64,000 nt of DNA from the NCBI RefSeq assembly GCF_000143415.4, contig NW_003314261.1, positions 3,650,880 through 3,714,879 on the forward strand, read 5' to 3'. This DNA comes from Selaginella moellendorffii. Lineage: Eukaryota; Plantae; Lycopodiophyta. Numbering within the stretch: the stretch's first letter is position 1; every line of letters begins with the position of its first letter. Position numbers and translations under genes: made by a program. The notes beneath the pieces are model-generated. The model searched no databases, was not told where the DNA came from, and was given only the letters and a program-made list of their open reading frames with translations. Below are positions 1 through 5,616 of this stretch, piece after piece.

Positions 1-380
1 CCGGTGATGGGATTGCCCACCGCGATCTTGGACTTCAGCCGAGCGGCGACGAGGCCGCCGCTGGCGCCCTTGAGATGGAATCCACCCTCGGGGAGGAAGC
101 AAGCGTTGGGGAGATTGCACCATTTCTTCAGCGACGCGCTGTAGCACCTGGTAATCTTGCGAGCCGAGTACCTGGGCCGGATGAGGAAGGGAGCAGCCTC
201 GCGCGATCGATTGGCCTCCCTCCACTGCTCTTGGAACGCTGGGCAGGTGGTGATGTGCCTCAGCTCGCGGCACACTAGGCGGACACTGAGGATGAATTCC
301 ACAGGAAGCATGGCGAGGATGCGCTGGAGCAGCGCCATCGGCAGCCTCTCCCATACCTTCGTCTTGAGCTTCTTTCCCAT
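1..380 (-). CDS. F-box protein, 5' part (runs off the window start)
   Basis: ATG at 380-378 opens MGKKLKTKVWERLPMALLQRILAMLPVEFILSVRLVCRELR..., an F-box pattern (W..LP......IL..LP......R.VCR). The frame stays open to position 1 (...GASGGLV...AVGNPIT). Confidence 0.8.
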   Translation of the reverse strand, partial: MGKKLKTKVWERLPMALLQRILAMLPVEFILSVRLVCRELRHITTCPAFQEQWREANRSREAAPFLIRPRYSARKITRCYSASLKKWCNLPNACFLPEGGFHLKGASGGLVAARLKSKIAVGNPIT

Positions 381-462
381 TGCAAAAACCCTAAACGGTT
401 AAAAAATTAAAGAAGACTTTTAAAGGCAACCCTACATTATTTATGTGGCCCTAAAATGCCCT

Positions 463-503
463 ATCCCACATGCCCAAGCTCAACGAGTTTCTTCGATATA
501 TAA
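463..503 (+). promoter_or_regulatory. Plant type-3 (U6/7SL-like) Pol III promoter: USE + TATA
   Basis: ATCCCACATGC at 463-473 matches the plant USE consensus RTCCCACATCG. TATATAA lies at 497-503. The ~23-bp gap is the Pol III-type spacing. Confidence 0.85.
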
Positions 504-526
504 GAGCTCGGTAGAGAGGGTATGGT

Positions 527-682
527 ATAAGCGCGCCCGCTTCAAGGTGGGAGTCAGCACGGTGTTATCCTCGGAGGGGGATTGTGACGTGGCTGATAAT
601 GCGGGGCACATCGCGTCAGGCGGGTAACCGAGCATCGCTATAGCTCCAGCTCTTGCCAGTGAAGGGATCACGCGCTCTTTTT
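527..682 (+). ncRNA. SRP (7SL) RNA, S-domain-only form lacking the Alu domain
   Basis: Helix 8 is GCGUCAGG-CGG-GUAA-CCG-AGCAUCGC (613-638), with the SRP54-binding CAGG/AGCA loop and a GNRA tetraloop. Helix 6 spans 555-595 and is capped by AUCCUC-GGAG-GGGGAU. Helix 5 pairs 546-554 with 643-651 and CUUC with GAAG. A closing stem AGCGCG(530-535)/CGCGCU(671-676) is followed by TTTTT (678-682). The TSS is estimated from TATA distance. Confidence 0.85.
678..682 (+). terminator. Pol III oligo-T terminator
   Basis: T5 run immediately after the closing stem of the SRP-like RNA. Confidence 0.7.
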
Positions 683-1267
683 CGCACCGCGATTTTGATG
701 ATTTGTTTCACTTGCGTGATTGGAAATCTATTAAATTCTCACGAGTTTGATGGCGTCATGGAATTGATTGAAATGGTGCCTCGCTCGCATATCGAGCGCC
801 CACAATCAAGGATCTTCTCTCTTCCGAGCATTCGAATTCCAAGGGTTTACAGGTTTTCTCCTCGAGGCATCCAAAAGATACCGTGGTTCAGGCATAAAAT
901 TGTTTGCAGGAAAATCGAGAAATCAAGATCAACGGCTATCAAAGAGCTTGTTTAGATTGAGGCCAGCGTACGTGGTTCTACATTCGTCTAGATTATGAGA
1001 TGCAAAAAAATATTACGAGGATGATCGCAACACGTAAAACATTCGTGTCTTCTTAACAACTCTTCCATCCCAGCCTGGCTTCTTCCGATCTCATCAATGA
1101 AGCTCTTTGTCGATTGAGACGCTTAGGCCTGGTGGATCGAGTCCAGCAAGTTTAACCGCCTTAGACCACCTTTTCAGCGATTGCGACCATTCACTGGGGA
1201 GATTCTTTGGTTACAAATGAATATCTAGAAAACTCGATGGTTTGTGTGTAGAAAATGTTGGTGGCAA

Positions 1268-2998
1268 ATGCTTCATGGATTCAAGCAACTGGAGGCCCCA
1301 GACATCTCAGAATTCGTGAGATTGATTAAGCTTTGCGGCAATTCAAGGAATCTTGTTCGTGCAGCGCAGCTAGAAGCACAGATCCTCCACAGCCCCCACA
1401 GCCAAGAGCGCTACCTCTCCAATCTTCTGGTAGAGATGTACGGGAAGTGCCGTGCACCAGCCGAGGCACGTCGCGTTTTCGATTCCATCCACAACAGGAA
1501 TCTCTACTCGTGGAATTTTCTCGTCGGGGCATATGCTCAGAACGGGCATTTGCTCGAGGCCAGAGCAGCGTTCGATCTCATGGGCGAGAGGAACGCCATC
1601 TCATGGACGGCCGTGATCAAAGCATACGTGGAATCTGGCCAACTGGAAAATGCTAAGATCCTGTTTGACCAGATGCCCGACCCGGATGTGGTGGTAAGGA
1701 ATGTCATGATTGCCGCATATGGCGAGACCGGGGATCTGGAAGAATGTCGACGAATCTTCGACAGGATGCCCGAGAGAACGGTAGTGACGTGGAATGCACT
1801 GCTCCAGGCGTACGCGTCCAGCGGCCACGTGGACGAGGCGCGCTGCGTGTTCGACCAGACGCCCGACCAGGACGTGGTGACGTGGAGCGCCATGCTCCAG
1901 GCCTACGTGGAGGCTGGCGACGTGGATGGCGCGCGAAAGGTCTTCGGTTCGATGCCCCAGCGCAACGTGGTCGCATGGACGTCTATGGTACGAGCGTACG
2001 GTGCCGCCGGGGATATCCCGGAATCGACGGCCCTCTTCCACAAGATGCCCGAGTGGGACGTAGTGGCGTGGACGGCTATGGTGGCTGTTCTTGGGCAGGG
2101 CGGGCATCTGGAGGAGGCGAGGGCGATGTTTGATTCGCTGCCCCACCAGGACGCGATCGCCTGGAATGCGATGATCGGCTCGTACGCGCAGCGCGGCCGG
2201 ATTGCCGAGGCGCGGGATCTCTTCCAGGAATTAGGAAGCCTCCGCTGCTCGCACAATCTCGTCGCCTCGTCGTGGAATGCCATCATTGCGATGCACGGGC
2301 AGACTGGGCAGATCGTGGAGGCGAAGTGCGCGTTTGATTCCATGCCGGAACACAGCATCGTCTCCTGGAACGCGATTCTTGTTGCATTTGCCCAGGCCAG
2401 GGATCTTGGGGCGGTGAAGAGGCTCTTCGATTCAATGCCGGCGCGGGATCCAATCTCCTGGACGGCAATGCTCGCCGCCACCGGCCAGCAGCGCGGCCAG
2501 GCGGCACGCGCGCACGAGATATTCAACCAGATCCCTTGCCCGACGGTGACAGCGTGGAATGCGATCATCTCCGCGCACGGGCAGAGCGGCGAATGGGGCG
2601 CCGCCATTGCCCTCTTCCGTGAGATGCTGCTCGCGGGCGCGAGCCCTAACGAGATCACGTTCACAGCAGTGCTCGCGAGCTGCGGCCATGGCGGCGGCCT
2701 CGCGGATGGGCGGCACTGCTTCCACTCCATCGCAGCGGATTTCGGGCGGAGGGTGATCGCTGATCACTATTACTGCATGATTGATCTCCTGGGCCGTGCC
2801 AAGCAGCTCCGCCACGCTGAGGAGCTCGTCGCTGCCATGCCTTACGTGCCGGATCCAGCGGCCAGGATTGCACTGCTCAGTGCATCATGCAGTGACGTGG
2901 AGCGTGGGACGCGGGTGGCGGACCACTTGCTTCAGTTTAGCCCCGAGAATGCAGCGTCCTATAACTTGATTTCCAACGCTTTGCAAGGTTCCTCTTAA
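1268..2998 (+). CDS. PLS-class pentatricopeptide repeat protein (tandem ~31-aa repeats, truncated E-type C-terminus, no DYW)
   Basis: Intronless ORF (first ATG 1268) with repeated V(S/A)WNAM..AYAQ.G.L.EAR..FD.MP motifs, then ITFTAVLASCGHGG and HYYCMIDLLGRA. It ends at ...AASYNLISN. Confidence 0.93.
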   Translation: MLHGFKQLEAPDISEFVRLIKLCGNSRNLVRAAQLEAQILHSPHSQERYLSNLLVEMYGKCRAPAEARRVFDSIHNRNLYSWNFLVGAYAQNGHLLEARAAFDLMGERNAISWTAVIKAYVESGQLENAKILFDQMPDPDVVVRNVMIAAYGETGDLEECRRIFDRMPERTVVTWNALLQAYASSGHVDEARCVFDQTPDQDVVTWSAMLQAYVEAGDVDGARKVFGSMPQRNVVAWTSMVRAYGAAGDIPESTALFHKMPEWDVVAWTAMVAVLGQGGHLEEARAMFDSLPHQDAIAWNAMIGSYAQRGRIAEARDLFQELGSLRCSHNLVASSWNAIIAMHGQTGQIVEAKCAFDSMPEHSIVSWNAILVAFAQARDLGAVKRLFDSMPARDPISWTAMLAATGQQRGQAARAHEIFNQIPCPTVTAWNAIISAHGQSGEWGAAIALFREMLLAGASPNEITFTAVLASCGHGGGLADGRHCFHSIAADFGRRVIADHYYCMIDLLGRAKQLRHAEELVAAMPYVPDPAARIALLSASCSDVERGTRVADHLLQFSPENAASYNLISNALQGSS

Positions 2999-5616
2999 CG
3001 GGAATTATTTTCAAGAAAAAGTTTCATCACATATATAATAAATGCTATTTTGTTATCCTAATATTTATGAAAGGAAATTGATATTTTCTTTACTTAAAAT
3101 TTTAAAAAATAATTTAATTAAAAAATCTTCCAACTATAAAGTGTAAGTAATCTATATATTTGAGAAAATTAATTAAAAGCGTTTCAAAAATTTGTTTAGC
3201 AAACTAAAATTTAAAAATTTCTTTACTTGATGATTTTTTAGTAAAGATAAAGAAGTTTTAATACACAAATTACAGTGTATATATTGTAATCTTTATTATA
3301 TTTATAATCATCACTTGCCTCACCATGTGATCGGCTAAAATCATAAGGTGGGAATATGTTTAAAACATAAATATTTATTTTTTCGTTTCTTCGTTACTTC
3401 GTCATAAAAGTTTTTTATGTGTGGTAAGCAAAGTAAACTTAATGAGAGCATCCGACAAAAAAAAGGGAGAGAAGAAGAAAATGTTAAAGTATGAGTGTCG
3501 TGGGATCACTGAATCTCAGTAATTACATCAAAATAAAAAAAAATAAAAGAAAGTAACTTTATTATTTATTTTACACTTTCAATATATCTTTTACACTAAA
3601 AATACAAACATAATAGACAAATTACTTTTCTTTTTGTTCTTTATTTTTTCGTTTCCACCAACATTTTATTTACACTATAGAAAGTAAAAGAGATTATTCT
3701 CTTTGGAATATATCCTACCTTTAAATTCAAAATTGACATTAATGCTTTTGAGATACTAACATGAGCACTTACAGACTGTATTTGCAATTAATATTTTGTG
3801 AAGTCGCTTAGTATTATTTTGCCTTTAAATCACATTAATATTTGGATTACACATTGATAGTAATATTTTGCCCTCTAGAGTTGAGCTAGCCCCGATTGGA
3901 GGAGCTAGCATGGAGGACTTACAGAGGAGGGAACTTATGGATGTTATGGTGGTGGTGGGCCGCTGTGATCATCCTTTTCATTTGTCATCATCAATGCACT
4001 AATGAGTGTATCTATTTCCTAAGCATGCAGAAATAGCAATACCTACATGTGTGAATAGAAGAGGAGGAAATGCTGGATCTTCCAAAAGCATTAGATTCTT
4101 GCTGTAGCCATCACACTAAGGTTGGTATGTTTCTAGTTAGACAACTTGTCCAAATTAATGTGGTTTTGTAGGGATCACATAATCCAAAATACTCATTTCT
4201 CGGCATATGCCCATCATTCCAGCTTACCAGATCTCACTCGTCCATTTTCCTAAAGGTAATTTCTACTTTTATTTGTACCTCTAATCACCAAGAAAAAGAG
4301 AAAATCAGCGTGATTGTTGAGAAAAATCTAAAGAAGGCACAAATCTGAATCTCCAACTGCTTGATTCGTTTTTCCTATGAAACTCTAACTTAACAGAACC
4401 TCTTTTTAGCATATCTCTTTTGGCCCATTGTGTCTTCTAGTTTAAATGATAAAACCTTTCACCCCGTGGTCAATTAGACCCTTTGCTCGAGCTGCTACTT
4501 GGAGGCCACTTGGTGCGCCTTGAGTGGCCACCTCCTCATAGATCATTGGATGATCATCACTTTTGGATACATGTAGTTCAGCATCGACTACTGTATTCAA
4601 GGATCAGAGGAACCAAAGAGCTTGAATTCTTCAAGTGATGGTTTGACTCCACTGATGACTGAAGTTATGGGGTTAGGATGCAGGATCAGCTGGAGAGAGT
4701 TGGGCAGGAGTTGGGATGGAAGAGGAGGCAATGACACACGCTGCATGTCTTTGATGTTTCCTGGTCCTTGAAATCTCCTAGAGCAAGCTGGAAAAGTAAT
4801 AATCAATTCAACAAGGATTTAATACAATACATATATATGGGCTGGCAGGCTGTGGGGATTGGGTTGCTGTGGCACAACAATGCCAGGTTTGATCTAACAT
4901 GATTGAAGTAAGGCATTAAATTGAAAGAGTATATTTAATTCCCTTAGAGAACAGGTCATATCTAATCTTTGGTGCAATAACAAGATGCAAAGCAACAGTT
5001 TTACATGCCTTAGTTAGCACTGGCAGGGTGGTTGACGCTCTAAGATTACCACTAGACTTAGCAAAAGTCATTACCAGTGCCTAGCATTCTAATGATGCAA
5101 AATCAGTGGCAACTACCTAGCCCTAATATTCTATATCCACTTTAAAATTAAGGCTACTTACAATTATTAGAGAAAATGACACATTTATTAATTAGTAGCT
5201 ACTTAAAATATAATATACCCTTGAATAAAGTAAATCATATGTATTTAACATTCATGAGTATGTCTTTCATTTTGTAAGGCATCCATAAATGAAAATATTC
5301 ATCATAAAATTACGGTATGAGTGGATGATTAATTGCCTTATATAAAATAGCTCATGGGATGAAATTTGCCACTAAAGCCTCCCTCATCAAGTAATTACCT
5401 TTTTTTAAATTGGCTTCAGAGGAAAGAAATAAGGTGTAATATATCATCTTTCTTGTTTGTATAGCCCTTTCTTATTGCCTCAACCTTGGAACTCTGAATC
5501 ATTTGTCACTTTTGCATTGTCTTTAACCATCACCACTGGAGTAGCCTAAGAAGACGGTAATTACCTCTTCTGGGAAATAACCAACAGAGTTAACCACCCT
5601 TACTGCTCTAGGTGTC

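Follow-up and report, generated by a model that had tools for sequence, protein, structure and literature searches.

A small gene resembling that for SRP (7SL) RNA lies between an F-box protein gene and an intronless PPR open reading frame (ORF) in a 64-kb window of the spikemoss Selaginella moellendorffii genome, the window being the whole stretch of DNA that was analysed (Table 1). An Rfam cmscan returned a single SRP match in the window, at 530-676 on the plus strand, and eukaryotic SRP models were the best Rfam matches for this unit. The Plant_SRP match (RF01855; model positions 101-248 of 305) reached 74.6 bits, below the gathering score of 105, with E 1e-20. The Metazoa_SRP match (model positions 103-248 of 299) reached 77.6 bits, above the gathering score of 70, with E 9.7e-18. 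The aligned segment lies within the model, and no sequence end cuts it short. It contains the S domain alone: helix 6, helix 8 and the distal part of helix 5 with its 5e loop (the S domain is defined in PMC4418401). A truncated match restricted to the S domain was what the first-pass annotation of this DNA had led us to expect from such a scan. Model positions 1-100 and 249-305, which comprise Alu domain helices 2-4, the UGUNR motif and proximal helix 5, have no counterpart at the locus. A permissive Rfam scan of positions 1-4000 found no Alu-like fragment at E ≤ 10, and none was found anywhere in the 64 kb. The S domain is directly abutted by a promoter on its 5′ side and by a terminator on its 3′ side.

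Table 1. Features of the S-domain gene and its neighbours, in window coordinates.
Feature	Position	Strand	Description and basis
F-box protein gene, N-terminus	1-380	-	Pfam F-box, E 3.7e-06
USE, TCCCACATGC	464-473	+	Plant type-3 snRNA-type promoter element; sequence
TATA box, TATATAA	497-503	+	23 nt after USE, 26 nt before unit
Predicted transcript, S domain of SRP RNA	530-677	+	~148-153 nt; Rfam matches, fold, DNA depth step
Closing helix-5 stem, 5′ arm AGCGCG	530-535	+	Pairs with CGCGCU 671-676; agrees with Rfam helix 5 pairs
Helix 6, SRP19-binding hairpin	555-595	+	GGAG tetraloop (GNAR-type) at 573-576; Rfam alignment
Helix 8, SRP54 M-domain site	602-648	+	Rfam alignment, both SRP models
Helix 5 3′ strand and closing-stem 3′ arm	660-676	+	Rfam alignment, model ~232-248
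T5 run, Pol III terminator	678-682	+	Directly after closing stem; sequence
PPR ORF, intronless	starts 1244/1268 (1268-2995, 576 aa)	+	Downstream of SRP-like unit

The minimum-free-energy fold of the unit (-59.4 to -60 kcal/mol) reproduced the three-way shape of the S domain, with a closing stem of six perfect pairs (530-676 to 535-671). The z-score of this fold was unremarkable (-1.47), so the case for the unit rests on covariance-model homology and not on thermodynamic stability. The core of helix 8 (617-634) reads CAGG/CGG/GUAA/CCG/AGCA, with a symmetric loop formed by CAGG at 617-620 and AGCA at 631-634, and the GUAA tetraloop at 624-627. GGGAUC at 664-669 falls in the 5e-loop region, the SRP72/68 site, and aligns to GGAU of the model; the role of the 5e motif with SRP72/68 is described in PMC4605306. 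All of the features that had been claimed at first reading (the USE, the TATA box, the T5 run, the parts of helices 5, 6 and 8 and the 6-bp closing stem) are present where they had been placed. From this anatomy, we infer that the unit RNA could be bound by SRP19, SRP54 and SRP68/72.

The USE 10-mer occurs once in the 64-kb window, compared with 0.44 occurrences expected by chance. In Arabidopsis, a USE-TATA spacing of 23 to 24 bp marks Pol III genes and one of 32 to 34 bp marks Pol II snRNA genes, and SRP RNA is counted among the type-3 Pol III genes (PMC8287931). Judged from its sequence, the layout of USE, TATA box and T5 run is that of a canonical plant Pol III type-3 gene, and its spacing fits the rule of PMC8287931. 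Transcription would start at about A529-G531, 26 to 28 nt after the TATA box, and would stop within the T5 run, leaving a 3′ U-run. The promoter region also contains a near-duplicate pair, TATAAGAGC at 499-507 and TATAAGCGC at 526-534. The second member overlaps the predicted start site, so that a second TATA-like element adjoins the unit, and one paralog in the reads carries a TATA-like stretch exactly at the 526-534 position.

The F-box gene and the Pol III gene are arranged head-to-head, with the F-box start codon, at 380, lying 84 nt upstream of the USE. F-box RNA contigs end at about 385. On the other side, the small-RNA gene lies upstream of the PPR ORF (window 463-2998). No exact or near-identical counterpart of the 576-aa product of this ORF was found in the protein collection; the search returned only paralogs at no more than 39% identity, the best named ones from Selaginella moellendorffii. 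The ORF may lack an annotation or be recorded as a pseudogene. A protein search with a minus-strand ORF of 63 aa that runs over the unit gave no candidates, and the 64-kb window contains no tRNA genes.

To place the locus against sequencing reads, a 601-letter query was compared with contigs from one DNA run (X10) and three RNA-labelled runs (X1, X4 and X16). The first-pass annotation had named an assembly deletion as one way in which the truncation might be unreal. Both junctions of the unit are bridged by contigs from independent runs, at 477-653 in X1, from 558 to beyond 900 in X4 and from 624 to beyond 900 in X16, and these extend more than 31 letters to either side of the junction. We found no point in favor of an assembly artefact or a mis-joined contig, and the bridging contigs refute it, leaving it a probability close to nil. 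A transposable element, SINE or retroposed pseudogene was likewise rejected: the unit lacks an A-tail, is not flanked by target-site duplications beyond the level of chance and occurs only once in the window. The sole repeat flanking the unit is an 8-mer at chance level, and the unit combines an S-part origin with an external promoter, as opposed to the internal promoter and Alu-part origin of SINEs.

In the independent DNA run, word depth was about 15 over the flanks and 130 to 500 over 531-677. The steps in depth, at about 530 and at 677, coincide with the boundaries of the Rfam match. The rise is about 10 to 30 fold; the depth sum is inflated by overlapping short unitigs, and we read it as roughly 10 to 30 copy-equivalents. 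The unit region was matched by 69 contigs of this run at 85 to 100% identity. Depth alone does not distinguish S-only copies from full-length 7SL, and it is the junction sequences that separate them. One other copy has a TATA-like stretch upstream of 525, followed by the shared non-7SL letters GTATAAGCGCGCC. Another reads CTATGAGTGTGCCCGC; here the junction is identical apart from CpG to TpG changes, which still permit G.U pairs. One contig (457-554; record 3 of the DNA run) is homologous across the promoter, and two paralogous contigs have T-runs immediately after 675 and 682. Judged from these shared junctions, S-only copies with identical ends number at least three or four besides the one in the window. 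In other copies of the family, the flanks are unrelated to those of the window. The truncated unit is not private, and the window locus is one member of a small gene family. The original description of a stand-alone Pol III S-domain gene thus holds insofar as a Pol III-type gene carries the S domain alone and gives way to that of a family member. No helix-5 extension was present at any visible paralog junction, although assembly into short unitigs biases which junctions show, and full-length 7SL copies may be among the roughly 10 to 30 copies of the unit.

RNA contigs on the unit were found in all three RNA runs, at a low depth of 3 to 9. The X1 contig begins upstream of the TATA box and enters the unit. 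The X4 contig runs from 558, where it abuts adapter sequence, to about 1018, and the X16 contig runs from 624 to about 993; both pass the T5 run. These two contigs thus start inside the unit and continue for about 340 nt past the T5 run toward the PPR ORF, at a depth of about 9. Coverage in X4 and X16 was absent between about 386 and 557 or 623, respectively, but present over the F-box exon, and this unevenness indicates that the RNA signal is not uniform DNA contamination. Candidates for its source are Pol III read-through, a Pol II transcript from the same promoter region and antisense RNA, the contigs being strandless. We conclude that some longer transcript overlaps the unit.

One alternative is that the unit is no free small RNA and acts as part of a longer transcript, either a structured 5′ leader or noncoding RNA toward the PPR gene or a Pol III read-through product. 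In favor of this explanation, the contigs begin at 558 or 624, cross the T5 run and end at about 993-1018, with 386-557 uncovered. However, they carry no strand information and stop short of the PPR ORF, which starts about 590 nt beyond the unit. The Pol III-type USE-TATA spacing, the T5 run after the closing stem and the unrelated flanks of other family copies also argue against it, and we regard it as quite improbable.

No discrete or abundant RNA of unit length (~150 nt) was seen in the three RNA runs, whose library type is not on record; the libraries may exclude a 150-nt non-polyadenylated RNA, so this is weak evidence either way. Nor did these three runs contain an abundant S-domain RNA with at least 85% identity, indicating that canonical 7SL was either not captured or has diverged beyond 85% identity.

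Another alternative is that the unit is the regular SRP RNA of the lineage, in which case spikemoss would have lost the Alu domain altogether and all of its 7SL genes would be about 150 nt long. In favor of this explanation, the visible paralog junctions are all promoter-like or T-runs, and genes of this kind would be missed by the Plant_SRP threshold (74.6 bits versus 105). Roughly 10 to 30 copies would also be a plausible size for the complete 7SL family of a plant. On the other hand, the visible junctions are a biased subset, and an SRP RNA would be expected to give far greater RNA depth than the unit shows. To our knowledge, all known land plants have kept the Alu domain and SRP9/14. We consider a lineage-wide loss of the Alu domain improbable.

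Across the contigs of the DNA run, the unit is far better conserved than its flanks. Conservation extends to the promoter boxes. In the paralog that is homologous across the promoter (457-554), the differences listed (seven substitutions and three indels, within an overall count of 11 substitutions and 3 gaps) all fall in 487-520. The USE, the TATA box and 521-554 are free of listed differences (Fisher p 0.001-0.01), and avoidance of the two boxes by the listed differences has a p of 0.013-0.046. The spacers of this paralog have diverged by about 15 to 20% with USE and TATA box intact, and its indels bring the USE-TATA spacing to 24 and leave the TATA-to-start distance unchanged. A contig that follows the flank of the window locus (300-550) differs by about 6% in the flank and has no differences in 521-550, a contrast that is not significant alone (p 0.16).

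Within the unit, only 583, 584 and 641 carry substitutions at a share of at least 10% among copies. The family majority at 584 is A (177/222), which changes a U.G pair of helix 6 to U-A. A at 583, a minority in the DNA run (about one copy's depth), changes a U.U opposition in helix 6 to U-A. With both changes the fold moves from -59.4 to -64.5 kcal/mol and helix 6 is strengthened. With 583T/584G and 641T, the window allele differs from what most of the family carries, and its helix 6 is the weakest among the variants seen. At 583, 584 and 641, the window reads T, G, T, the DNA family majority T, A, C and the flank-matching RNA contigs A, A, T/C. These differences are probably allelic or haplotype variation, and chimeric unitigs are also possible. 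Since they carry 583A/584A together with the flanks of the locus, the RNA contigs appear to come from another allele of the window locus and not from the family majority. Some copies have CpG to TpG changes in the closing stem, deletions of 1 to 2 nt or a 96-nt skip; the small deletions and the skip indicate that part of the family is decaying.

The signs of decay raise the question of whether the family as a whole is a set of truncated 7SL pseudogenes that lost both Alu arms, spread by segmental duplication and are unused, with the S domain homogenized by gene conversion with full-length 7SL. Concerted evolution is common in snRNA and 7SL gene families, and conversion from canonical 7SL could mimic constraint on the unit. 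The decayed copies (CpG to TpG changes, small deletions and the 96-nt skip), the weakened helix 6 of the window allele and the lack of abundant RNA in the three RNA runs are all in keeping with disuse. Other observations are harder to accommodate. Loss of the two Alu arms requires two separate deletions at paired helix-5 positions, with a terminator right after the stem, an outcome that is unlikely by neutral decay. Gene conversion that crossed the junctions from full-length genes would bring the Alu arms back. T-runs stand at the same place in several copies, and one paralog with diverged spacers retains the USE, the TATA box and Pol III spacing. On balance, a family of unused pseudogenes seems rather unlikely, though it is the main alternative.

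We tentatively favor a conserved, transcribed family of mini-7SL genes in spikemoss, to which we assign a probability of roughly 40%. This reading is preferred because neutral decay does not readily explain why both Alu arms were lost symmetrically at paired positions of helix 5, why the terminator comes right after the stem, why the same ends recur in several copies despite diverged flanks, or why the USE, the TATA box and their spacing are preserved. The suggestion made at first reading that the unit does not look like random decay is supported to the extent that the symmetric truncation is no one-off decay event: the same truncated unit with the same ends is found in several copies and is far better conserved than the flanks. 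Under the mini-gene reading, each family member would produce an RNA of about 150 nt consisting of the 7SL/SRP S domain only, in which distal helix 5, sealed by the 6-bp stem, would be joined by helix 6 with its GGAG loop and helix 8 with its GNRA and CAGG/AGCA loops. The predicted RNA would keep the sites for SRP19, SRP54 and SRP68/72, would lack that for SRP9/14 and would be unable to reach the elongation-factor site of the ribosome. Its most likely role would be in an Alu-less subparticle beside canonical SRP, or as a buffer or decoy for S-domain proteins. The end of helix 5 has been proposed as a recognition feature for Exportin-5 in vertebrates (PMC4418401). The stem end of the unit, with its predicted 3′ U-overhang, resembles this feature, and export of the RNA by analogy is conceivable.

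Neither an S-domain-only nuclear SRP gene in plants nor 7SL of Selaginella was described in the literature that our searches covered, in line with the earlier statement that no description of such a nuclear variant in plants was known. A scan of JGI metagenomes with a helix-8 18-mer returned 20 loci; none was an SRP RNA by Rfam, and these were set aside as chance matches. What is new here is that S-only units form a multicopy family, an unusual finding in a plant. In eukaryotic SRP, the Alu domain together with SRP9/14 is viewed as an invariant part, and it is this part that couples targeting to elongation arrest. It is doubtful that spikemoss runs an Alu-less SRP, with the ~150-nt RNA either as its only cytosolic SRP RNA or as a second, arrest-free class beside the canonical particle. 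If it did, this would be the first nuclear-encoded, gene-level split of the targeting half of SRP from the elongation-arrest half in a land plant. A conserved S-only RNA with its own Pol III promoter would be a natural experiment on the targeting half alone in a plant cell, and might be informative about arrest-free targeting, titration of SRP19/54/68/72 or a nucleolar role. The locus also carries a warning for annotation, as S-only genes fall below the Plant_SRP threshold and surface only as partial Metazoa_SRP matches.

Compared with nuclear 7SL of plants (RF01855), the unit has the same promoter type, a T-run and homologous distal helix 5, 5e loop, helix 6 and helix 8. It differs in lacking the parts of the model on either side of the S domain and in scoring below the gathering score of Plant_SRP, and helix 8 ends in a GNRA tetraloop (GUAA), whereas the Plant_SRP consensus has a longer loop. 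Bacterial 4.5S/small SRP RNAs and plastid SRP RNAs are natural examples that function with neither an Alu domain nor elongation arrest. Their structure is confined to helix 8 and part of helix 5, with no helix 6 and no SRP19 or SRP68/72 sites, and they are non-nuclear, with no USE or TATA box. The likeness of the unit to these RNAs is limited to the absence of arrest capacity, since the unit has helix 6 and the 5e region. SRP RNAs of the Dikarya fungi have a reduced Alu domain from which helices 3 and 4 have been lost (PMC4605306). They nevertheless keep a 5′ domain with UGUNR and a full helix 5 and bind Srp14/Srp21, whereas the unit has nothing outside the S domain. SINEs derived from 7SL (Alu, B1 and hagfish SINE1) are known only from primates, rodents and hagfish, and no 7SL-derived TRIM is known (PMC10886601). 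SINE1 elements share with the unit the status of a multicopy 7SL derivative and have an Alu-part origin, internal promoters and A-rich tails. Unlike SINEs and TRIMs, the unit is of S-part origin, has an external promoter and a terminator and lacks a target-site duplication and an A-tail. Laboratory S-domain constructs (human 7SL nucleotides ~101-255) assemble with SRP19, SRP54 and SRP68/72 in vitro, and an S-domain fragment of 7SL occurs in minimal retroviral particles. The boundaries of the spikemoss unit almost equal those of the laboratory constructs, which serve in structural biology. The laboratory and retroviral S-domain RNAs, however, arise by cloning or by cleavage of full-length 7SL and not from separate genes.
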